Shown here: positions 8,918-64,000 of the stretch, in pieces
Layout of the letters: every line of letters begins with the position of its first letter
Position numbering within the stretch: position 1 is the first letter of the stretch
Sequence record: PP408249.1
Reading direction: 5' to 3' (one strand)
Length of the DNA: 64,000 bases
Position numbers and translations under genes: made by a program
The notes under the pieces: model-generated
The model's database searches: none
Seen by the model: the letters and a program-made list of their open reading frames with translations, nothing else
What the model was told of the DNA's origin: nothing

Positions 8918-8951
8918 CTGTGTTTGGTAACAAAATGTGGTAATTAGGCAC

Positions 8952-8980
8952 TTGACATTGGTATTGTCTTTTAGTAAACT
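8952..8980 (+). promoter_or_regulatory. sigma70-type promoter of ncRNA copy A
   Basis: TTGACA-17-TAAACT with no ORF downstream for ~1.6 kb. Confidence 0.75.
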
Positions 8981-8986
8981 GTGCGC

Positions 8987-9730
8987 TTGCGTAAGAAATG
9001 TATATACGATAGTGCTATATGTATATACAGACAAGTGGCTCTGTTCCGTTATTGGATATTGGTAGTAGAAACTATCCCCATCGTGCTGTTATTGTAGTTC
9101 CGATAGTGTCGGGTTAACGTTTTAACAGTTATTTAAATTATGATTTTGGGTGCCACAGAGATTGTACTTACTAAAAGGACTTAGTAAGAACCGCATATAA
9201 TCTCGAAACTTGTGTAGGATGTTGGTCTAACCACGGCATAGAATATATGCCTCAACTACTACACGGAAAGGATGATGCTCTGGTTGAAACAGAGTTTCTA
9301 TAAATCTTTCAGTATAGATTCCGTATGGCTGAAAGTTGAAACACCAACATCAATAGACTATAGTTTTTGTTAGTGTGGCTATAGTTTATTCCGGCATTGA
9401 AAGTATATACAGTGGTGCGAGACAGTAAGCATTAGTAGCAACTGTATATATGAGTAAGAGGATGCGTTTACAATGAGGAATTACCTATCGGTGCCCGCCT
9501 CAGGGATTGCACTTCCCAACGTACACTAAACTTCGTACCATACCGAAACATACGTTTCTGTTATTACGATTTCCTTCCCAAACGGGGAGGAAATCTTCTC
9601 CGCCCGAATGTCATAAGATCAAAAGCATTAATAATTAATACATAAAATTCGTTTAATTAGTTATTAAGTATATGAGTTGTAGTTTACGAAAACGAATATA
9701 CTTAATAACTACCAGTGAAGCTTGCTTCGC
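8987..9730 (+). ncRNA. Large structured non-coding RNA candidate, copy A (homologue at 62440-63170)
   Basis: ORF-free, GC-richer than flanks, many hairpins; blocks shared with copy B at 9031-9086 (53/56), 9128-9153 (26/26), 9267-9295 (27/29); ends approximate. Confidence 0.75.
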
Positions 9731-9734
9731 TGTT

Positions 9735-10470
9735 TAAAATTGCAATTTGTATTTTCAATTTTATATTTTGAAGTGTGTTTTTGAAAATCAATCTATAAAA
9801 TATAATTTTAAATATTATTTTTAAATGTCATTTTGTGATTTTAATTTAAAATACTATTTCATGATTTAAAATGGAAATATATTAAATAATATCATTTTGT
9901 GATTTTAATTTAAACAATTTCATATAAAACTATTTTGTCTATTTCTTTTATAATCTTAAAGTCATTAAAAACCCTACAAATGTAGGGTTTTTATTTGATT
10001 ATATGGTATTCGGTTTTAGACATTCAGATTATTATAATTAATAATATCTGTATGATAACTATATTTTATAGAAATACATTTACTAATTACATTTGTCAAT
10101 AAATGGTTATTTTCTTTATATTTAATACGTCTCGGGAGTATATAGCAAATATGATAAATCGAGACACATAATATTTGTGTCTATATTTTTAGTTTCATTA
10201 CTCTACATAATTGATTAATAATGTATACAGTTATATACGCTATATTGTAATAACAAACCAAATTATATAGAGAATATACATTAAACTCTGTTTTGTGTTA
10301 AATCGACACTACATATATTATTATGTAGTGATACCTGCTGTATATAAAACTAATTAGTTATTATGTGCTTTAGGAGAATTCCATTATAATTAGTTTTCTG
10401 TGTCATACTCAAATGATGAAAGAATTATATTCTTTCATCTGTTTTATTATATGTTATTCAAGATTTATAA
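9735..10470. other. Very AT-rich non-coding region with direct repeat and multiple palindromes (origin-like)
   Basis: tcattttgtgattttaatttaaa twice (~9827, ~9892); inverted repeats at 9966-9993, ~10307-10330, ~10346-10397, ~10416-10440. Confidence 0.45.
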
Positions 10471-12816: not shown

Positions 12817-13374
12817 ATGAATCATTGTGTTAGGTTTGCTTTTTTAGATAGAAATATAAAAAGTTCTATAACAACGTTTATAGTTATACCTTTAATTCTT
12901 ACGTCTGTAATATATTTCCTTTTTTCAGAACAAAATGTGTGGCCAGCGTGTTTTTATTTTGTCACTATGCTTATAATTTTGTTTATTGCAGAACTAGCAG
13001 CGTGTTCATCTGGAAATTTTTTTAATTGTGCTTTAAGTATATTCTCTATTTTTAGAAATATTGGTCACTTTGACACAACTTGGAAAATAACAAATGATGG
13101 TTTTATTTATTCTTTAAAAGATAACGAAACTATACACATCTTTGTAAATAAAAACGGCGTATATTTGCATAATAATGGAAAATTTATTTATGTAGATAAT
13201 GTTAAAAATACTAAAATAGATTTATCTAAACTGTCTCACCCGGTATTTATATTAATAACATTTTACCTAAAACATAAACTCAAAGAAGATATGATACTGG
13301 CAGATTTATACGGATCAGTAAGTTCTAGTGTATTCATGAATGATGAAGATTTTCAAAAATTATACAGACGCTAA
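12817..13374 (+). CDS. Predicted membrane protein
   Basis: 185 aa, two N-terminal hydrophobic helices. Confidence 0.65.
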   Translation: MNHCVRFAFLDRNIKSSITTFIVIPLILTSVIYFLFSEQNVWPACFYFVTMLIILFIAELAACSSGNFFNCALSIFSIFRNIGHFDTTWKITNDGFIYSLKDNETIHIFVNKNGVYLHNNGKFIYVDNVKNTKIDLSKLSHPVFILITFYLKHKLKEDMILADLYGSVSSSVFMNDEDFQKLYRR

Positions 13375-13750
13375 AAAATATCTAAATACGTTTGTTTCTT
13401 GTAAACCAGAACAAACAGATATGCATAGTGTATTAAATGGATATCAAAATTATTGTATATTCTCGTGTTTAATAGATTCTGCACAAAATTTAATAACAAC
13501 TAAATTTTCTGATACTAATACTAATTCATACGAATGGATTATTTCGTACAAAGAAAATAATAAAAATATAACATATTCTGTTGAAAACAAAACAGACATC
13601 CTAAAGAATAACGGGTTGTCTGTTGCCTTTATTGTATGTAGGGCAAAAATAGTGTATACTAATAAATTAACAGAATTTGGTAAAACTAAATTAAAAGAAA
13701 AAAGAAATATTCTGTTAATAGACAGAGATAAAGAAAAACTAAAAATATAA
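13340..13750 (+). CDS. Hypothetical protein
   Basis: 136 aa ORF in operon. Confidence 0.65.
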   Translation: MMKIFKNYTDAKKYLNTFVSCKPEQTDMHSVLNGYQNYCIFSCLIDSAQNLITTKFSDTNTNSYEWIISYKENNKNITYSVENKTDILKNNGLSVAFIVCRAKIVYTNKLTEFGKTKLKEKRNILLIDRDKEKLKI

Positions 13751-30366: not shown

Positions 30367-30443
30367 CCCTCGGTAGCTCAGTTGGTTAGAGCGCGCGACT
30401 CATAATCGCTAGGTCACTGGTTCGAATCCAGTTCGAGGGACCA
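30367..30443 (+). tRNA. tRNA with CAT anticodon (Ile2 or elongator Met), copy 1
   Basis: Cloverleaf, loop CT-CAT-AA, TTCGAAT, A73, encoded CCA; body resembles bacterial tRNA-Ile2; acceptor 5' CCCTCGG. Confidence 0.9.
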
Positions 30444-30465
30444 ATTTTAAGATGTTGTGCTTTTA

Positions 30466-30550
30466 GCCCGAGTGGTGAAATTGGTAGACACAGGAGACTT
30501 AAAATCTCCCGCTTCGCAGCGTACCGGTTCGAGTCCGGTCTCGGGTACCA
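30466..30550 (+). tRNA. tRNA-Leu(TAA), copy 1
   Basis: ggaga-CT-TAA-AA-tctcc, long variable arm, CCA. Confidence 0.95.
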
Positions 30551-30600
30551 AACAAAAGATATAAATACTTAACAAGATAGGAAACTATTCTAAAATTAAA

Positions 30601-30676
30601 TGGCTAGTAGCTCAGTTGGTAGAGCAAATGACTGTTAATCATTAGGTCGTAGGTTCGAGTCCTACCTAGCCAGCCA
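30601..30676 (+). tRNA. tRNA-Asn(GTT)
   Basis: aatga-CT-GTT-AA-tcatt, G73, CCA. Confidence 0.95.
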
Positions 30677-30702
30677 ATTACACTTTGTTGTATATTCAAT
30701 AT

Positions 30703-30778
<76 letters not shown>

Positions 30779-30847
30779 ATTTTAAATAACAGTTGTATCT
30801 AAAGAGATACAATAGTCTAAATAAAATATTCATATAATGTTTCAAAC

Positions 30848-30924
30848 GGGACTTTAGCTCAGTTGGTTAGAGCGCGCGACTCATAATCGCTAGGTCACTG
30901 GTTCGAATCCAGTAAGTCCCACCA
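30848..30924 (+). tRNA. tRNA with CAT anticodon (probably Ile2, lysidine-modified), copy 2
   Basis: Identical to copy 1 outside the acceptor stem; acceptor 5' GGGACTT; CCA. Confidence 0.9.
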
Positions 30925-30974
30925 ATTTTTATATACAAATCAAACTATACTTAAACTATATAATGAATGAATAT

Positions 30975-31059
30975 GCCCGGTTGGTGAAATCGGTAGACAC
31001 AGGAGACTTAAAATCTCCCGACGAAAGTCGTGCCAGTTCGAGTCTGGCACCGGGCACCA
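30975..31059 (+). tRNA. tRNA-Leu(TAA), copy 2
   Basis: Same anticodon arm as copy 1, different variable and T arms, CCA. Confidence 0.95.
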
Positions 31060-31926
31060 AACTCCTACAAAAGGAACATATTATAGTATGTTCCTTTTTT
31101 ATTATGATATTTTTATTATGAATGAAATAATGCATATATCTGCCAACACATACGTAATAGAATATCGCGTATTAAACAAGTTAGTAGTCACTATAAAAAA
31201 TAATAGATCTTTTACATTATGGGTACATTTTGATATCGGTACATTTTCTATGGCATGGAAATACAATGCAATATAGAATTAAAAAATGAAATACATTATT
31301 AATTTACAATACTCAACAGAAGTAATATATATGCCGTGTTTCAACATAATATCGTTATGCGATAATAGATCTGTTACTATCCTTTCTATTACTATGATAT
31401 TTAAGATAAGATACTATTTGCATCCGATGTTCCGTTATATTCTATAATACATAATATTTTTATTGTAACAAATACCGGAAGTGCTTAGATAATATATAGC
31501 AATTCTGTTTATTATCGATATTGCGGTATACTTAGTATTTCTTATTAACCGTATTACATAGAATAAAGAATGGAAAAAATTTTAACTATTTCACATAAAA
31601 CATTAATATGTGAACTGTCGTTATTAAAATGGTCGAAATCCATAGTTTGTGTTTATTCTTACGAAATAATATGGTATGTTCGGTTGGATAAGTATTGTTA
31701 TGTTGTACGACTAAGATGATGATAATGAACTGTATTTTTTCCTATTCGTACTATTTAGAACGCATCGTATGTCATGCAAAAATCTACAAAGGGTTTGTAG
31801 TCAGTAAAAATACTTTTTGTGAGAAATCCGTAATAGCTTTATACTTAATAAATAGTGGTAGTTATTTTCATAAATGTTACGTCGATCATTACTTAATTGT
31901 ATAGATATATATTTTAATAAAAATAG

Positions 31927-31955
31927 TTGACCAAACAAACAAAACAGTATATAAT
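31927..31955 (+). promoter_or_regulatory. sigma70-type promoter upstream of tRNA-Arg
   Basis: TTGACC-17-TATAAT. Confidence 0.7.
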
Positions 31956-32006
31956 GTTACGCATATAAAGCATTATTACAAAGCTATTATTAGTTGTACA
32001 AGATAT

Positions 32007-32083
32007 GCGCTCGTAGCTCAGCTGGATAGAGCATCCGCCTTCTAAGCGGATGGTCGGGGGTTCGAATCCCTCCGGGCGCGCCA
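32007..32083 (+). tRNA. tRNA-Arg(TCT)
   Basis: tccgc-CT-TCT-AA-gcgga, CCA. Confidence 0.95.
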
Positions 32084-32351
32084 ATTTTAAAGAGTGTTGT
32101 GTTATGCAAACAATAAGATTTGACATAAGACTTCTTCGTTATAGTATGAAACAAGGTTTCTGTTGTATAGGTAAAGATATATTTGAAGTGTGCAGAAAAA
32201 CTCGGATCAGTCCAGGTCAGCTAAACTTACGAAAAAATTATATAGGACGAGTATTAATCGGAATTGATTCGAACTATAATCTGCACAATACCTGTTTAGT
32301 AGGCTGGACTCGGAATAAAAATATTATAGTATAAAAATTTATATTAATAAT

Positions 32352-32594
32352 ATGAATAGATGCAAAGAACATCTACAATACAGAACAATCAAAAAGCATA
32401 CATCGACTTGTAGGAAATGCAAAGAGTTATCGTTACAAATAAAATTATTTTGGCTTCAACAACAAGCATTCAGTATTAGAACTGATACTAGCGGAATATA
32501 CATATTCGATATTAAATATAATTCTATTTACTTATACTCTGTAGCTTGGTATAATACAGAATTATACGGTAAAGGGAAAATAATTTTAGAATAA
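32352..32594 (+). CDS. Hypothetical protein
   Basis: 80 aa ORF, CxxC. Confidence 0.5.
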   Translation: MNRCKEHLQYRTIKKHTSTCRKCKELSLQIKLFWLQQQAFSIRTDTSGIYIFDIKYNSIYLYSVAWYNTELYGKGKIILE

Positions 32595-32622
32595 ACATGT
32601 ATATATAAGAGTACCTCAAATA

Positions 32623-32955
32623 ATGAATAATTATTCTAATGATACAGATGTTCTAAAATGGATAAAGCGTAACAATAGAAAAAATGCACGTCTAATTTCA
32701 TATATAGACGGAATATATAATATTGTTTATTTCGATGCCGGAAAAGCAAGAGTTGGCATAGTAAAAGACAATATGCACTGTAGATACGGAATACATAGTC
32801 GTGGATCTATGTATTCGAAAGATATAATGAGCCTGTGGCAATCTAGTACAGGTTCGTGTTCGCCTGATGATGTAAAGATTATGCAAGATTATCTAGACGA
32901 TAAATGCATACTTCCGGAATTTGATTTTTCTCAGATTAAAAATTTAAAATGGTAA
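32623..32955 (+). CDS. Hypothetical phage protein
   Basis: 110 aa ORF with protein-like composition. Confidence 0.75.
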   Translation: MNNYSNDTDVLKWIKRNNRKNARLISYIDGIYNIVYFDAGKARVGIVKDNMHCRYGIHSRGSMYSKDIMSLWQSSTGSCSPDDVKIMQDYLDDKCILPEFDFSQIKNLKW

Positions 32956-32978
32956 ATAATATAACAATATAGTTTTAT

Positions 32979-33055
32979 CGCAGGGTATGCAAGAGGTCTA
33001 AGCAGAAAGGCTCATAACCTTTTTATCGTGGGTTCGAATCCCACCCCTGCAACCA
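32979..33055 (+). tRNA. tRNA-Met(CAT), initiator-like
   Basis: C1/A72 mismatch, G2-C71, C3-G70, G11-C24, loop CT-CAT-AA, CCA. Confidence 0.85.
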
Positions 33056-33064
33056 GTTTTATAT

Positions 33065-33141
33065 CTAGGCATAGCTCAAGTAGGTAGAGCACTTGCTTTG
33101 GGAGCAAGAGGTTGGGGATTCGAGGTCTCCTGCCTAGACCA
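33065..33141 (+). tRNA. tRNA-Pro(TGG)
   Basis: cttgc-TT-TGG-GA-gcaag, C1-G72, A73, CCA. Confidence 0.9.
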
Positions 33142-33150
33142 ATTTACTAT

Positions 33151-33223
33151 GCAGTCCTAGCTCAATTGGTAGAGCACTGTCCTTCCAAGTCAGATGTTAC
33201 GGGTTCGAGTCCCGTGGGCTGCT
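33151..33223 (+). tRNA. tRNA-Gly(TCC)
   Basis: CT-TCC-AA loop, U73; CCA not fully encoded; one T-T mismatch in anticodon stem. Confidence 0.85.
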
Positions 33224-33976
33224 CAATATTCTAATATAATTGATTGGTATATCTAATCGATGATTCATGTAGTGGATAAATATGGAAGTATAGTTATACC
33301 ATCTAATATAACGGTGCTGGAAATACAGGCATACACAACAGAGTTATTGTATGTAAGAAAATCTCATTGTTTATGTTTATACATTCCTAATATAGGAAAT
33401 TATGCTTTATGGTTTTTAGACAGATAGGTTAAAAATATAAATTGATATTGTTCTGTTTAAGGAACCCACATTAAATGGCAGGTTGCATATTTAGACTCGA
33501 TTTGTCTATTTTTCGTGAAAATGTATATAGCATTTCTAGGTTGTCTTATACAAAATCTATATGTGTTTTAATAAAAACTAAACCGACAAGCAATAGAAAA
33601 CAATTAGAAATATATGTTGTAGATAAAACAACTGATTTTTTAGTTGCATGCAAATATTTTTAGCTTATCTATTATTTTATAAATTGACTTACCTTTAAAT
33701 AACCATTATATATATTTGATATAATAACTATTCTAAATAGAAATAAAACCATAAATACACATAATAACGGTGTGGATTTATGGAAAACATATTTAGGATA
33801 TCTATTAATGCTAACGAAGGTATTATACGAATATCCCCTACTTACTTTTTTAATGGTGTTTTTTATTCAAAGCATTTGAATATTTTTATAATAGATCCCG
33901 ACGGATATTTAATAAGAAAAATATATACTTGTAGTACATTCTTATGATGATTTCTTTTAAATATACAAAATAACAT

Positions 33977-34005
33977 TTGACACAAGTATAATTATTTCGT
34001 ATAAT
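33977..34005 (+). promoter_or_regulatory. Consensus sigma70 promoter
   Basis: TTGACA-17-TATAAT upstream of 34037 and the two Ser tRNAs. Confidence 0.8.
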
Positions 34006-34036
34006 AAGTGCATAAAATAACAAAAGAGAATTTTAA

Positions 34037-34396
34037 ATGATTTCCAAAATTCAAATTGTATACGGAATATATCTTCCTACTGCCGATGCAAAAATTATAT
34101 ACGAAGACTCGGAATACGAATCTAATAAAATAAATAAAAATATTAGATTATTTGCAAATGATGCATATTTAGAAGATAAGATTTTAGAAAATAAGGAATT
34201 CGAAGATAATCCCTATGTTCCGCACTTTTATGGTATCTTTTGTAAAGAATTCGATAATGACCAAAGTGCATACTTATATAATGTTCCTAAATCTTTTATA
34301 GATGAATATAATAATGTAGCTCCAGCTATTTTAGCTAGACTCGGCTATTTAGATAGAGTTGCAGGAAAACAACATTGTAGAATAATTTACGAATAG
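34037..34396 (+). CDS. Hypothetical protein
   Basis: 119 aa ORF behind consensus promoter. Confidence 0.75.
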   Translation: MISKIQIVYGIYLPTADAKIIYEDSEYESNKINKNIRLFANDAYLEDKILENKEFEDNPYVPHFYGIFCKEFDNDQSAYLYNVPKSFIDEYNNVAPAILARLGYLDRVAGKQHCRIIYE

Positions 34397-34410
34397 AATT
34401 AACTAGTTTT

Positions 34411-34500
34411 GGAGAGGTGATAGAGTCTGGTTTATTATACTAGTCTTGAAAACTAGCGGATCGAAAGGTCCCGTGGGTTCGAATCCCACCCTCTCCGCCA
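34411..34500 (+). tRNA. tRNA-Ser(TGA)
   Basis: ctagt-CT-TGA-AA-actag, long variable arm, G73, CCA. Confidence 0.95.
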
Positions 34501-34505
34501 AATAT

Positions 34506-34595
34506 AGATACTTGACCGAGTGGCTTAAGGTGCTTCCCTGCTAAGGAAGTGAGTTTGAAAAAGCTCCGTAGGTTCGAATCCTACAGTATCTGCCA
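34506..34595 (+). tRNA. tRNA-Ser(GCT)
   Basis: cttcc-CT-GCT-AA-ggaag, long variable arm, G73, CCA. Confidence 0.95.
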
Positions 34596-57608: not shown

Positions 57609-57649
57609 GGAATTGCGATTTAGGTTTTGGAATTCTAAATCGCAATTCC
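57609..57649. repeat. 15-bp perfect inverted repeat
   Basis: ggaattgcgatttag / ctaaatcgcaattcc with 11-nt loop, immediately after 57187..57594. Confidence 0.8.
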
Positions 57650-57942
57650 GGTTTCCAAATTCAATTTTAGGCACAAACTCGGATCCGCATTTGCATTTTG
57701 CATTTACATTTTGTGTTCTGAGTGTATATGCAAAATGCAATCGCGCATGTTGTCGATGCATTGGCTAATCTTTTATTTTTGATAGTTTAGAAAAGATTAA
57801 GAACAGAAACTATCTGTAAATTAATAAAAATAACATTTACATTACATACACATATGCATATACTATATACAAGTTATGCGCTGTTGCATACGTAAATACC
57901 TCCTATGTTGTTTAGATATGTCGATTCTGGTATAACTAGATA

Positions 57943-58148
57943 GACCTAAGGATGATGCTAGTGATTCCTTAGTATTGTATATTCTAGCTGAGTATAAAGA
58001 GTAAGGGGCTTTATACAAATAACAATTCCCTAGGCAAGATATACCGCTCCGTTGTGCTGACGAGCATAATTTGCCCAGATACAGAGCACGTGACTGGTCT
58101 GAGGAGCATTTATATCAGAAAGGCAGACTTATGTTTGCCTTTCTTTTT
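57943..58148 (+). ncRNA. Candidate small RNA ending in an intrinsic terminator
   Basis: TTGTTT-17-TATAAC at 57908-57936; several stems; terminator agaaaggcagac-ttat-gtttgcctttct-tttt at 58117-58148. Confidence 0.4.
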
Positions 58149-59500: not shown

Positions 59501-60413
59501 TTCATGACCACACAATCTGTATACTACTATGTCTTTAACTATATTTTCTATATCAGCTAATTTGTATACAATAATTTGGTATTCTGCGCAAGTGACACAA
59601 TGCTGTTATATAGACATAATAACACGCGACACTAATATTTTTATAACCTATCCATTTTATAATAACATATTTGTATCTAAAATTAGTTCTAATACAACAC
59701 TTTAAGGAAAATATGAACACTATATTAGAGATAAGTAGTGGAATAAGAAATAATTATATAACAATCTATCATTTTAAATATGACTACTATCTAGAAGTAA
59801 ACACACCTTTGTTTTCTTTAATGATATCTATTCCGATAGTTCCTATATCAGACAATACTTGTATTACTTTAATAAAAAAGTATTAATATGAATATACTCT
59901 TTATATCAAACAGTTTATCTAATATACTATATCATAAAGCTTATGATATACATATGATAGATATTAAGATTAATAATTCTACTTCTATTTGGCTTACATA
60001 TTCTTTCAATATTACTAAGGTATCATTTAAATATATTATCTGATTCGTTTTCTTATTGTATGAGTTGCAATTGCAAATTACTCTTATTTGTAATTGCATA
60101 TAAACAATCAGTTGCTATTAAAAGTATTTGCTGTTAATATATTATATAACAGTGCAATTGATATTTTAAAATACAGTGTGCAATACATCTTACATGTATT
60201 AAAATTTGTGTGTTACTTATTTTGCATTAATGATTAATATACCTCTCTTACAGTACAAAACTAATACTATAAACAATTTGTTCGGGCGATCGTTCTCGAA
60301 AAGTATACAAGTGAGAGATGACAATCTAATTATACTTGTTAGTTTCTATATAGAAGGTTCTAAATATAGAAAATTTGTATATAACAAAGAATACCTCGAA
60401 GGGATTTCAGCAT

Positions 60414-60680
60414 ATGCAAACAACAATCGTTAATGCCCTAAAATCTATTAATGTAAAGTATTCGGATATATTTTACACAAATGGTAATTTGTGTAATACC
60501 GTTACAATACGAAATATTCGAAAAAACGGTAAATTAGATTCGGCAGAACAAATTAATGTCGAATCAGTTGTGAGCAATTATTTGATTCAAAAAGATTTAA
60601 ATTTGCCCTTTTCTATTCAATGGGCAAATAATGATTGTTGCGAAGAGTATACTACACTTATTCTCTTCTTCAGAAAATAG
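60414..60680 (+). CDS. Hypothetical protein
   Basis: ATG 60414 with AAGGG RBS (track starts 60375). Confidence 0.65.
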   Translation: MQTTIVNALKSINVKYSDIFYTNGNLCNTVTIRNIRKNGKLDSAEQINVESVVSNYLIQKDLNLPFSIQWANNDCCEEYTTLILFFRK

Positions 60681-60938: not shown

Positions 60939-61151
60939 ATGCTTAAATTAGTTACCACTGTGCTATACAACGTCTGTGTAGCTTCGTTAATAATGATTGT
61001 GTTTGTATGTGGTATAAATTTAGTAATGTATATAGATAACAATACTGCCAATAATCCAGTTGTTATCTTTATTTCCCTTCTATCGGTTATTTGGGGTGTT
61101 GCGAGGTTAAGCTATATGTTTGTTACTATCCAATTTCAGTCCAAGAAATAA
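60939..61151 (+). CDS. Small membrane protein
   Basis: AGGGGG RBS, two hydrophobic helices. Confidence 0.65.
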   Translation: MLKLVTTVLYNVCVASLIMIVFVCGINLVMYIDNNTANNPVVIFISLLSVIWGVARLSYMFVTIQFQSKK

Positions 61152-61166
61152 AAATATTAGTGACTT

Positions 61167-61508
61167 ATGATAGATAAAAACGGAAATACAGAAGACTTTG
61201 ATTTTGATAAGGCATGCACTATAACTGATCTGTCTGTTCCTCTTCAGCAAAAAATACAATCATATAAATTAAATAAAATATTGGTTATGGTTGCAATCCT
61301 TAAATATTCGAATATAAAACAAGAAATTGGGTGTTTCGCTATCATATGGGATCATATAATAAGAATAACGGTTGAAGTAAAATGCAATCCGTATGCAGAA
61401 ACACACATACTCATGCATGCGCATGTATTTTCTAATTCCGATTCATGCACTCATAGCGTATTGCTGAATTACAGAAACAAATATTTACCCACTAATTATT
61501 ATAATTAA
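61167..61508 (+). CDS. Hypothetical protein
   Basis: 113 aa ORF. Confidence 0.6.
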   Translation: MIDKNGNTEDFDFDKACTITDLSVPLQQKIQSYKLNKILVMVAILKYSNIKQEIGCFAIIWDHIIRITVEVKCNPYAETHILMHAHVFSNSDSCTHSVLLNYRNKYLPTNYYN

Positions 61509-61509
61509 T

Positions 61510-61914
61510 ATGGAAGATATTCTTAAAATTGCTAAACTAATCGGGTACGTAAACATACATGCAAATAAACATTTTCAGTATGGTTTTAACAAAGATATGG
61601 AACATGTATGTGTTAGTGCTAAGAGTAGGACAAGTATAAAGGGAATAAAATACCTTTATGTAGTAATGAATATATATTATATATATTGCAAGCAAGAAGG
61701 TGTTGCCGTTATATTAAACGAAGTAAACACTGATGAAATGCCTGTATTAGATAATCTTTATGCTAAACTTAATGATTTAGTTACACATAAATCTGTTATA
61801 AAATTTAAATATACAGAAATAACACAAGAACAAATAGATTTGTTGAATAATAGTGAAAGATATATAGTATATTTTGACTCTAATTTAGAATACGGAATAG
61901 CTTCGTTTTATTAA
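61510..61914 (+). CDS. Hypothetical protein
   Basis: 134 aa ORF. Confidence 0.7.
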   Translation: MEDILKIAKLIGYVNIHANKHFQYGFNKDMEHVCVSAKSRTSIKGIKYLYVVMNIYYIYCKQEGVAVILNEVNTDEMPVLDNLYAKLNDLVTHKSVIKFKYTEITQEQIDLLNNSERYIVYFDSNLEYGIASFY

Positions 61915-61926
61915 TTTGAGGAATAT

Positions 61927-62124
61927 ATGAAAAAACAAACAGGATTTACAGATTGGCCATTGATTAGTTTGGGTACAATTATTATCTTGTGTGTATGGGT
62001 ATTAATTCTACAATACACAGAAATAAATGTACTAGAAGAAAAATGTAACAAAGTAGGTGGTATTTTTAATAACACCGTTTGCATACGGTCAGATGCAGTT
62101 ATTAACTTAGATAAGGTAAAATAA
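61927..62124 (+). CDS. Small membrane-anchored protein
   Basis: GAGGA RBS; TM helix then CNKVGGIF..C. Confidence 0.7.
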   Translation: MKKQTGFTDWPLISLGTIIILCVWVLILQYTEINVLEEKCNKVGGIFNNTVCIRSDAVINLDKVK

Positions 62125-62125
62125 A

Positions 62126-62383
62126 ATGCCAAAACTTTACGTTAACAAAAAACATGATACCATTTATCTTCAATTAGATCATTTCTCATCTGATACCGTA
62201 TCTCCAATTAATTACAACGAAGATGTAGAATATGTAATTGATAGGATCCGTAGTCTGCACAAATCCGGATTCGGATTTAGTCATATGAATACTCTACAAG
62301 AATATCTTACGGCAAGAACAGAGCAGGATAAGAAGTTTAAGCTTAAAGTAGAAGACTTTGAAGTAGTATCGTTTAAGATTTAA
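62126..62383 (+). CDS. Hypothetical protein
   Basis: AAGG RBS, 85 aa. Confidence 0.7.
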   Translation: MPKLYVNKKHDTIYLQLDHFSSDTVSPINYNEDVEYVIDRIRSLHKSGFGFSHMNTLQEYLTARTEQDKKFKLKVEDFEVVSFKI

Positions 62384-62404
62384 AATTATACACAATCAAA
62401 GTAT

Positions 62405-62433
62405 TTGACATTTGATGTGTATACTAGTATAAT
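62405..62433 (+). promoter_or_regulatory. Consensus sigma70 promoter of ncRNA copy B
   Basis: TTGACA-17-TATAAT followed by ~860 nt with no ORF. Confidence 0.85.
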
Positions 62434-62439
62434 TTGCTC

Positions 62440-63170
62440 ATGCTGTCGTAACAGCTACTTTGTTCCATTCACAAGCAGCTCTGTTCCATTATTGGATATT
62501 GGTAGTAGAAACTATCCCCATCGTGCCCACAGTATTGTTCTGTTAGAGACAGATTAAAGCATACAAAAGTGGGTTATTTAAATTATGATTTTGGGTGCTG
62601 AAGTATAGTCGTTAGACAAGGATATGTCTAATGTTGCAAAGGACTATGCGAAACGTATTATATATCTTATCCGATATTAGATATGTAATAAAAGGATGAA
62701 GCTCTGGTAGAAACAGAGTGTAATTCTTGCTTGTATATCACACGGATATACAAAAGAATATACACACCAACTTCAGCATTGATGTAAATTTTCTAGCATA
62801 GGTATATAACATCGATGTTCCGGGATTCATTGGAAACAATGAGAGAATGATGTAATCTGAGGAAAAAGGTCCCCGCCTCGTCCATATTACGAAATGGTTT
62901 TGAGTACTTATGCCCTCGTCCTATATTGGCATATGGGTTTTATATTTCTCCCGTAATTACGGGAGAATATAATTTCCTGAACCTACTTGGAAATGGACGC
63001 TTCTGCTGTGCAAAGCACAGCATCTAAGGGCCTTCACCCTTACCGCTAAGAGCAAGAGCAAAAGCAATATAATTACAAATAAGAATTAATTATTGTTTAG
63101 TTTTATCGTAATGAATATGAAGATAAAAACTAAACAATAATTCACATGTAGCGTTAGCTACTGTGAATAT
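62440..63170 (+). ncRNA. Large structured non-coding RNA candidate, copy B (homologue of 8987-9730)
   Basis: Shared blocks at 62471-62526, 62573-62598, 62691-62719; position-equivalent stems; ends approximate. Confidence 0.75.
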
Positions 63171-63299
63171 CTACTATAGTATTAACCATATATGTATACA
63201 AGGGCATAATATGGCTGTTACTTGTTGACAATATGATATGTGTGTTACACTTCGTATATTAAATATACATTACAATGTTTTGATTATTAGGAACATACT

Positions 63300-63890
63300 A
63301 TGTCATTTTCTTTGACTGCTGCTATTAATCGATACACTAGTCTAATAGAAGAAAATTTCAAAATAAATTATCTGAAGAATTTTGAGTCAGGATATATCTC
63401 ATATAAATTACTAAGAAATAAAGCACTCCTGCATACCGAAATATCACATGGACTTGATTACATAAAGGTAATTATTTCTTATACATATGTAGAAAATAAT
63501 GTCGAATTAGATATCAAATCATCTATTGTACATTCGTATATTTCTACTACTGATTGCTCTAAATTTAAAGTAGGAGATATAAAAACGTTTTACGATTCAG
63601 TTCCTCGCGGAAATGTTTTTAATATCAAAGAGAATACTCAAGTTAGCTGGTCAACAGCTAATATTGGAATTTACGAGAATCCGTTTAATCTTAATTATAT
63701 CTCGAACAATAAGTATATTCGATTAGAAACAGGAGACATATTTGTCTATATTAATGATAGTATGGTAAATGAACTACAAGAACATATGCATGTTCATTCT
63801 ATATGTACTAACGAAACAAAGAAGTTTTATGTAAGAGAAATTGATTTAAACATGCTACATTACAAAAACACATTATGGAATAAAGAATGA
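63300..63890 (+). CDS. Hypothetical protein
   Basis: 196 aa ORF with AGGA RBS. Confidence 0.75.
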   Translation: MSFSLTAAINRYTSLIEENFKINYLKNFESGYISYKLLRNKALLHTEISHGLDYIKVIISYTYVENNVELDIKSSIVHSYISTTDCSKFKVGDIKTFYDSVPRGNVFNIKENTQVSWSTANIGIYENPFNLNYISNNKYIRLETGDIFVYINDSMVNELQEHMHVHSICTNETKKFYVREIDLNMLHYKNTLWNKE

Positions 63891-64000
63891 ACTACAAAGC
63901 ATTAGAAGTATTTTATTTCTTTCTAGAACATTACAAGGTAAATCCAGTAGCCGATTTGGAATTTAAATTCGAACCCTCAGGTAGTGATGACCAATCTAAG

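Follow-up and report, generated by a model that had tools for sequence, protein, structure and literature searches.

What does the region at positions 62440–63165 (+ strand) of the DNA analysed here encode, a protein, a control element of the adjacent genes, or a large RNA in its own right? The window, the whole stretch of 64 kb, is the last part of the record of the Pseudomonas jumbo phage vB_Pa-PAC2, a PA5oct-like Wroclawvirus. A first-pass annotation had proposed that this locus (copy B) and a second one (copy A) specify two diverged copies of a large structured RNA. The comparison of sequences strongly supports a structured paralogous RNA at copy B, but each genome carries three such paralogues rather than two: A and B inside the window and C outside it. 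All features that the first-pass annotation had listed were found where it had placed them. Copy B measures ~630 nt to the CAAAAGCA motif and ~725 nt with the 3' stem-loops that follow, counted between predicted ends. Copy A occupies 8952–9730 on the same strand, promoter included, and copy C, which is enlarged to ~1.2 kb by large insertions, lies at ~75,833–77,030 of PA5oct and ~61,070–62,300 of the PAC2 record; BLAST, which matches three places per genome, delimits it in PAC2 at 61,230–62,280. The segments around B (62400–63180) and A (8940–9740) are 100% identical to vB_Pa-PAC2 and 98.8–99.7% identical to ten other records, all of them PA5oct-like jumbo phages of Wroclawvirus, the single genus of the family Arenbergviridae. 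All three copies are kept in 11 of 11 Wroclawvirus genomes with at least 98.8% identity. From ~49,650 onwards the window is the counterpart of the 39-kb terminal repeat of PA5oct, and since copy B lies inside this repeat, each packaged genome should contain it twice.

One member of the family had been seen before. Copy A is ncRNA004 of PA5oct (GenBank MK797984.1, 246116–246734; window 8999–9617, 99.2% identity), a discrete 619-nt transcript that the PA5oct record describes as "putative lncRNA" on the basis of RNA-Seq. It is one of four ORF-less transcribed regions of this phage and accounts for 0.08% of the phage reads early, 0.03% in the middle and 0.02% late in infection (Lood et al. 2020, PMC7318152). 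The same study lists copy A as a transcript but no other copy of the family, and it reports neither structure, paralogues nor function for ncRNA004 (PMC7318152). Copy B carries no annotation in PA5oct, where it corresponds to 12826–13606; the records of PAC2, Cassandra, Deifobo and others place three or four very small hypothetical CDSs over it. Copy C is annotated as several tiny hypothetical CDSs in PA5oct and PAC2. These spurious CDSs across RNA genes of several Wroclawvirus genomes need correction. Copy A has thus been flagged earlier as a transcript, while the structure, the three-copy organisation and the conservation of the family are undescribed in the literature searched.

Each copy is preceded by a predicted promoter of its own, as the first-pass annotation had noticed for A and B. 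Upstream of B, TTGACA and TATAAT are separated by 17 nt (62405–62433, + strand), a 12/12 match to the sigma-70 consensus, and the spacing from the −10 element places the predicted transcription start at ~62440. The promoter of A (8952–8980, + strand) matches in 10 of 12 positions, that of C in 12 of 12 with an extended TG in addition. The annotated span of ncRNA004 starts ~11 nt past the predicted start site and stops at the onset of the motif GAUCAAAAGCA (9617–9627). A protein-coding reading of copy B could be ruled out, as no meaningful ORF is kept among the copies. The region of B contains no ORF above 50 amino acids, the one of 50 amino acids begins within the promoter, and the reading frame that starts at an ATG in the second conserved block runs for 7, 14 and >50 codons in the three copies. 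The G+C content of the RNAs is 38–39%, compared to 31% for the window.

The copies have in common a series of sequence blocks, of which three, of 33, 25 and ~23 nt, are identical in A, B and C. Between A and B alone the conserved 5' blocks extend to 38, 26 and 29 nt; each occurs exactly twice in the window and in none of 100 shuffles. In copy A the three blocks are placed at 9054–9086, 9129–9153 and 9267–9295. The architecture of copy B, all on the + strand, can be described along these blocks. It begins with hairpin P1 (GCUGU-CGUA-ACAGC, 62442–62455), in place of which copy A has a different, larger hairpin (9000–9028), and continues with a tandem CUYUGUUCCAU motif (62458–62468 and 62479–62489), whose second repeat marks the start of the conserved core. 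Hairpin P2 (62485–62496) runs into invariant block 1 (62494–62526, 33 nt), which itself contains hairpin P3 (GGUAG-UAGAAA-CUAUC, 62501–62516). Helix P4 (62526–62530 with 62569–62573) encloses hairpin P5 (62539–62553), and both covary among the three copies. Invariant block 2 (62574–62598, 25 nt) is predicted by the energy model to pair with the 3' end of block 1, both partners being invariant in sequence. P6 (62603–62610 with 62642–62649) holds an inner hairpin P6a (62611–62632) with a conserved AAGGA in its loop and is followed by a GAAAC junction (62650–62654). P7 is a hairpin of 12 bp in B (62656–62690), and in A and C other sequences with inserts stand at the same anchor. Conserved block 3 (AAAGGAUG..GCUCUGGU.GAAACAGAGU, 62691–62719) includes hairpin P8 (62702–62718), the loop of which resembles that of P3. 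The two-part hairpin P9 (62723–62759), a conserved ACACCAAC (62764–62771), P10 (62776–62818) and a conserved UUCCGG (62818–62823) lead to P11 (UCAUUG-GAAA-CAAUGA, 62827–62842). This is the GAAA-capped hairpin that had been read as replacing a large insertion of A, and it is indeed found in that position: copy A has the CAUUG/CAAUG arms of P11 (9395–9399 and 9471–9475) around an insert of 71 nt. P12, a GAGG...CCUC hairpin (62859–62879), presents a conserved CCCGCCUC block in its loop and has a counterpart at 9475–9501 of A and a variant form in C. The variable 3' domain (62882–63040) comprises hairpins at 62882–62897, 62910–62932, 62941–62971, 63005–63021 and 63027–63040. The third of these is similar in sequence to a hairpin of A (9568–9595), and the fourth, GCUGUGC-AAA-GCACAGC, is extra in B, as the first-pass annotation had stated.

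Helices of different sequence recur at the same places in the three copies. Across A, B and C, P4, P5, P6, P6a, P7, P9b and P10 form 128 of 130 standard pairs although their sequences differ, mostly on both sides, and their distances from the conserved anchors agree to within ~1 nt; for several helices the register in this comparison was set manually. The arms of P4 are CUGUU/AACAG in A, CCCAC/GUGGG in B and CCUUU/AAAGG in C, and the helix extends in each case from the last base of block 1 to the base preceding block 2. In the same manner, P6 sets in 4 nt past block 2 and reaches to the GAAAC junction, P7 abuts block 3 with its end, and P10 spans the stretch from 4 nt past CCAAC to UCCGG. A covariance model of the 5' core recovers A, B and C with 148–157 bits (E ~1e-29 to 1e-31), copy B reaching 156.6 bits (E = 4e-31) at 62470–62603, and nothing else above 17 bits was found with it over 400 kb. 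When 23 sequences of the 5' core are aligned with the model, 99% of the cells are paired, a proportion that drops to 32–45% when the partners are slid by 1–3 columns, and four pairs have changes on both sides. Because the family is confined to one genus of near-identical genomes, the covariation rests on three paralogues and a few polymorphisms. Three observations point to the + strand: 11 of the tabulated pairs of the paralogue helices are G-U and would turn into A-C mismatches if the opposite strand were read, the promoters face this way, and RNA-seq assigned copy A to this strand. Compared to dinucleotide shuffles, the folding energy has a z of −8.3 for B on the + strand and −5.6 for A; the reverse complement of B folds somewhat more poorly than its + strand (z = −5.9). 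Overall, helices at equal anchored positions and shared blocks bear out the proposal of a large structured RNA whose core is fixed and whose periphery varies by insertion and deletion of modules. Gene conversion could have contributed to the identity of the blocks.

The 3' parts of A and B had been described as equivalent, and this description holds and can be extended to C: each of the three copies has an AT-rich stem with a further short hairpin behind it. In B, the 3' motif GAGCAAGAGCAAAAGCA (63050–63066, + strand) includes GAGCAAAAGCA, which ends at 63066 and is shared with A as GAUCAAAAGCA. Downstream, the long AT-rich stem-loop (63088–63142, + strand) consists of 17 perfect base pairs (63088–63104 with 63126–63142), extendable to ~21 and purely A/U, and then come CACAUG and a terminal short hairpin with a G+C-containing stem (63143–63165, + strand). 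Copy A has a stem of 16 bp (9658–9711) and a last hairpin at 9715–9730; C has a counterpart of this hairpin as well. The apical 32 nt of the AT-rich stem-loop are identical in A and C, whereas the outer parts of the stem differ. We rejected a reading of 63088–63142 as an intrinsic (Rho-independent) terminator: the stem is of A/U only, a terminator scan did not call it, and since a U-tract is missing it is not a canonical one. The ordinary terminators of the phage, with G+C cores flanked by A/T runs, are unlike the stems of A, B and C. We infer that the AT-rich stem and the adjoining hairpin form a module peculiar to this family, by which the 3' end is set or protected, and the stem of 17–21 bp could serve as a site for a double-strand RNase. 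ncRNA004 is annotated to end 40 nt before the stem of A, which would be compatible with processing, although this end is an annotation boundary only. Behind B there is no canonical terminator, so that transcription could continue into the downstream gene.

Two duplications stand out in B, the tandem CUYUGUUCCAU (62458–62489) near the 5' end and a duplicated GAGCAA (63050–63061) near the 3' end. In the energy model the first CUUUGUUCCAU repeat pairs with the second GAGCAA repeat, and the GCUCU that opens the second 5' repeat pairs with an AGAGC overlapping the first GAGCAA. Such pairing between the duplicated 5' repeats and the GAGCAA repeats is absent in A and C. A closing helix between the two ends of the RNA was rejected: the minimum-energy fold of B contains it as UUUGUUC/GAGCAAA, but it is not reproduced in A or C.

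Polymorphism among the phages was compared between each copy and its surroundings in alignments of eight genomes. Of the 727 nt of B, 16 are variable (2.2%), four times fewer than in the flanking CDSs (8.4%; p = 1e-10). The corresponding values are 1.05% versus 3.0% for C (p = 3e-4) and 2.9% versus 5.6% for A (p = 0.004). Several of the changes in B preserve the structure. In phage 30-3, 62528 C>U and 62571 G>A together turn a C-G pair of P4 into U-A, and in Deifobo 63006 C>A and 63020 G>U turn a C-G pair of the extra hairpin into A-U, for which Callisto has the intermediate state; the loop of this hairpin (63005–63021) varies freely between AAA, UUC and UUU. The change 62553 A>G retains a pair as U-G wobble, a one-base deletion at 62945 takes out a bulge, and the polymorphisms at 62737 and 62745 weaken predicted pairs near a loop. 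Six stem substitutions in A preserve pairs versus two that disrupt them; the polymorphisms of A that weaken predicted pairs are at 9213 and 9324. In C, all changes fall in loops, junctions or the AT-rich tail. PAC2 and 30-3 have, in one hairpin of copy C (PA5oct L004:26869–26871), the 3-base loop AGA instead of TCT, an exact inversion with the stem intact. The first-pass annotation had named the unconstrained decay of stems in one copy as the finding that would speak against its proposal. We see no such decay, given that the copies are kept in 11 genomes, are less polymorphic than their flanks and carry compensatory or pair-preserving substitutions. These patterns indicate that selection on A, B and C is purifying and preserves the structure. 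The protein encoded just downstream of B is down to 84.7% amino-acid identity between phages, while the RNA keeps at least 98.8% nucleotide identity. Its gene (63300–63890) and the intergenic region upstream of it are hypervariable (window 63200–63900), with up to 25 variable sites per 100 nt among eight phages. This hypervariability beside copy B could reflect diversifying selection.

The wider surroundings of the copies offered further observations. Downstream of A, an AT-rich region (9740–10000) contains two 27-nt direct repeats (9824–9850 and 9888–9914) and a strong bidirectional terminator (9966–9993). The minimum of the window's cumulative GC skew falls nearby, and the region might serve replication or regulation. 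The counterpart of ncRNA001, a putative lncRNA of PA5oct with high expression, lies at 57891–58126 and 57609–57748. It has two long inverted repeats just upstream and is followed by an unusually G+C-rich stretch (58–60 kb, 42% G+C), is unrelated to A, B and C and has no match in Rfam. Twelve tRNA genes are clustered at 30367–34592, more than 20 kb from either RNA copy of the window. Beside copy C, positions 59,688–60,437 of the PAC2 record are annotated as 'putative RNA polymerase beta prime subunit', whereas the PA5oct counterpart is annotated as a virion structural protein and the PA5oct study concludes that this phage relies on the polymerase of its host (PMC7318152), so that the annotations disagree.

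Searches for relatives of the family ended within the genus. Rfam 15 returned nothing relevant for A, B or C at the gathering score, and at E < 10 there were chance hits far below it; the covariance models of ROOL, GOLLD, OLE, introns, RNase P, tmRNA, 6S RNA and ribozymes in this release gave no match. Among 50,697 phage records, blastn matches came solely from the 11 Wroclawvirus genomes. A weak match in an uncultured phage of 642 kb, located inside coding sequence, was dismissed as chance. A plasmid collection contained no relatives, and exact and degenerate patterns of the blocks gave chance matches alone in IMG/VR, metagenomes and GTDB genomes, as judged by inspection or with the covariance model. 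The protein beside B has no relatives in IMG/VR or outside Wroclawvirus, and the neighbouring proteins match neither Pfam nor PHROG. An antisense target was sought in the window and ~150 kb of PA5oct (~214 kb in total) and rejected, complementarity of at least 12 nt not exceeding AT-rich chance. A, B and C are a new class within the large ornate non-coding RNAs of phages and bacteria and are homologous to no described family.

How might such an RNA act? The best explanation, which we hold to be probable, is that copy B is a stand-alone gene, one of three paralogues restricted to Wroclawvirus, for a large structured RNA that acts in trans. Host RNA polymerase would transcribe copy B from its perfect sigma-70 promoter, probably early. 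About a dozen helices would then arrange the invariant junction blocks into a compact tertiary core, the working site, leaving the peripheral helices and the 3' domain free to vary. The AT-rich stem and the next hairpin would serve processing or stabilisation, by setting or shielding the 3' end, rather than classical termination. Long invariant junctions common to paralogues with wholly diverged helices point to one common partner or activity at this core. In trans, the cores of A, B and C may bind the same partner, a protein or a nucleic acid, and the RNA may serve as a scaffold or decoy during host take-over; it is the pattern of invariant junctions and diverged helices that leads us to prefer a scaffold or decoy that acts in trans and is transcribed from an early promoter of the host type. 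An unlikely alternative gives the RNAs an activity of their own: A, B and C might be a class of large RNA, an RNA-only homo- or hetero-oligomer or a new ribozyme, that a virulent jumbo phage uses early, and the paralogues would then have one functional core in common and different peripheral domains. That they assemble without protein into homo- or hetero-oligomers like ROOL, GOLLD and OLE, with the invariant blocks as intermolecular interfaces, is an unlikely reading by analogy. ROOL and GOLLD form RNA-only cages (10.1101/2024.12.08.627333), and the size, the ornate multi-helix architecture, the phage origin and the stand-alone promoters of our RNAs resemble them. GAAA motifs are enriched in A (10 versus 3.7 expected, P = 0.0015), the conserved junction at 62818–62823 contains a palindromic CCGG, and three co-resident paralogues with identical cores could co-assemble. 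However, the RNAs are not homologous to the ROOL, GOLLD or OLE models, and conserved complementary loop pairs were not identified. A new ribozyme with the unpaired invariant blocks as catalytic core, suggested by invariant runs of 23–33 nt in junctions beside freely covarying helices as they are typical of catalytic cores, is quite unlikely: no ribozyme, intron or RNase P model matches even at E < 10, and neither a candidate substrate nor a cleavage site is evident.

Copy B could also be a 5' leader, structured and of very great length, through which the genes from 63300 onwards are controlled in cis, as there is no U-tract terminator between 63166 and the ATG at 63300, just weak promoter-like sites occur in this interval, and copy C is likewise followed by a gene on the same strand after ~170 nt. 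We regard this as very unlikely, since copy A has no same-strand ORF for ~750 nt and is followed by the strong bidirectional terminator at 9966–9993. Moreover, the genes behind the three copies are unrelated, the gene downstream of B evolves fast while the RNA is constrained, and RNA-seq annotated A as a discrete transcript of 619 nt. A role as a sponge that titrates the host regulators RsmA and RsmN of the CsrA family through GGA motifs would account for the AAGGA in the P6a loop, which is kept in all three copies despite covariation of the stem, and for AAAGGAUG in block 3, which we take to resemble the SELEX consensus of CsrA. Sequestration of RsmA is expected to raise psl transcripts and to lower those of the type IV pilus. 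A shift in this direction, psl up and type IV pilus down, is what the PA5oct study reports for infection (PMC7318152). Still, GGA and ANGGA are not enriched in A, B or C (GGA in B: 11 versus 8.1 expected, P = 0.17), two conserved sites are few for an RNA of over 600 nt, this reading does not account for the long invariant blocks and the transcript of A is of low abundance, which makes the sponge highly improbable. Finally, the copies might not be functional RNAs at all but DNA-level elements (origin, recombination or packaging signal) or decaying duplications. A and C are located at divergent gene-orientation junctions, and A adjoins the AT-rich region with 27-nt repeats and the skew minimum of the window. 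We find this scarcely credible, because compensatory and G-U-preserving changes fit an RNA of the + strand, the transcript of A runs from promoter to end in the RNA-seq data, the copies are less polymorphic than neighbouring genes and B is not adjacent to such repeats.

The preferred reading of a trans-acting RNA is accessible to experiment. The phage is a therapy candidate, culturable on the host PAO1 and genetically accessible, so that deletions, pull-downs and structural work are feasible, and the presence of three paralogues in one genome allows the functional core to be separated from the scaffold by comparison. Large, intricately folded RNAs of unexplained role are few, and each one studied gave new RNA biology, such as the cages of ROOL and GOLLD.

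The closest known relation of copy B is PA5oct ncRNA004, which is copy A itself. Both have the invariant blocks, the helix plan, a sigma-70 promoter and the 3' AT-rich stem, whereas the GAAA-capped P11, the extra hairpin and a different sequence of the 3' stem set B apart. RsmY and RsmZ of Pseudomonas likewise present GGA in a hairpin loop and a junction, a likeness that concerns a candidate mode of working and not membership; copy B is five times longer, is not enriched in GGA and has no sequence relation to them. OLE (RF01071) is likewise a large RNA, of ~600 nt, with a conserved complex structure; it works with protein partners and dimerises. It is bacterial (Firmicutes) rather than phage-encoded, and A, B and C are neither homologous to it nor accompanied by partner genes. 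In their general character the RNAs also resemble ROOL (RF03087) and GOLLD (RF01998), large ornate stand-alone non-coding RNAs that are often encoded by phages or prophages and arrange many helices around conserved junctions. In contrast to these, A, B and C do not match the ROOL and GOLLD covariance models, lie at least 20 kb from the tRNA cluster and reside in a virulent jumbo phage of a Gram-negative host, where they form a set of three diverged paralogues per genome.
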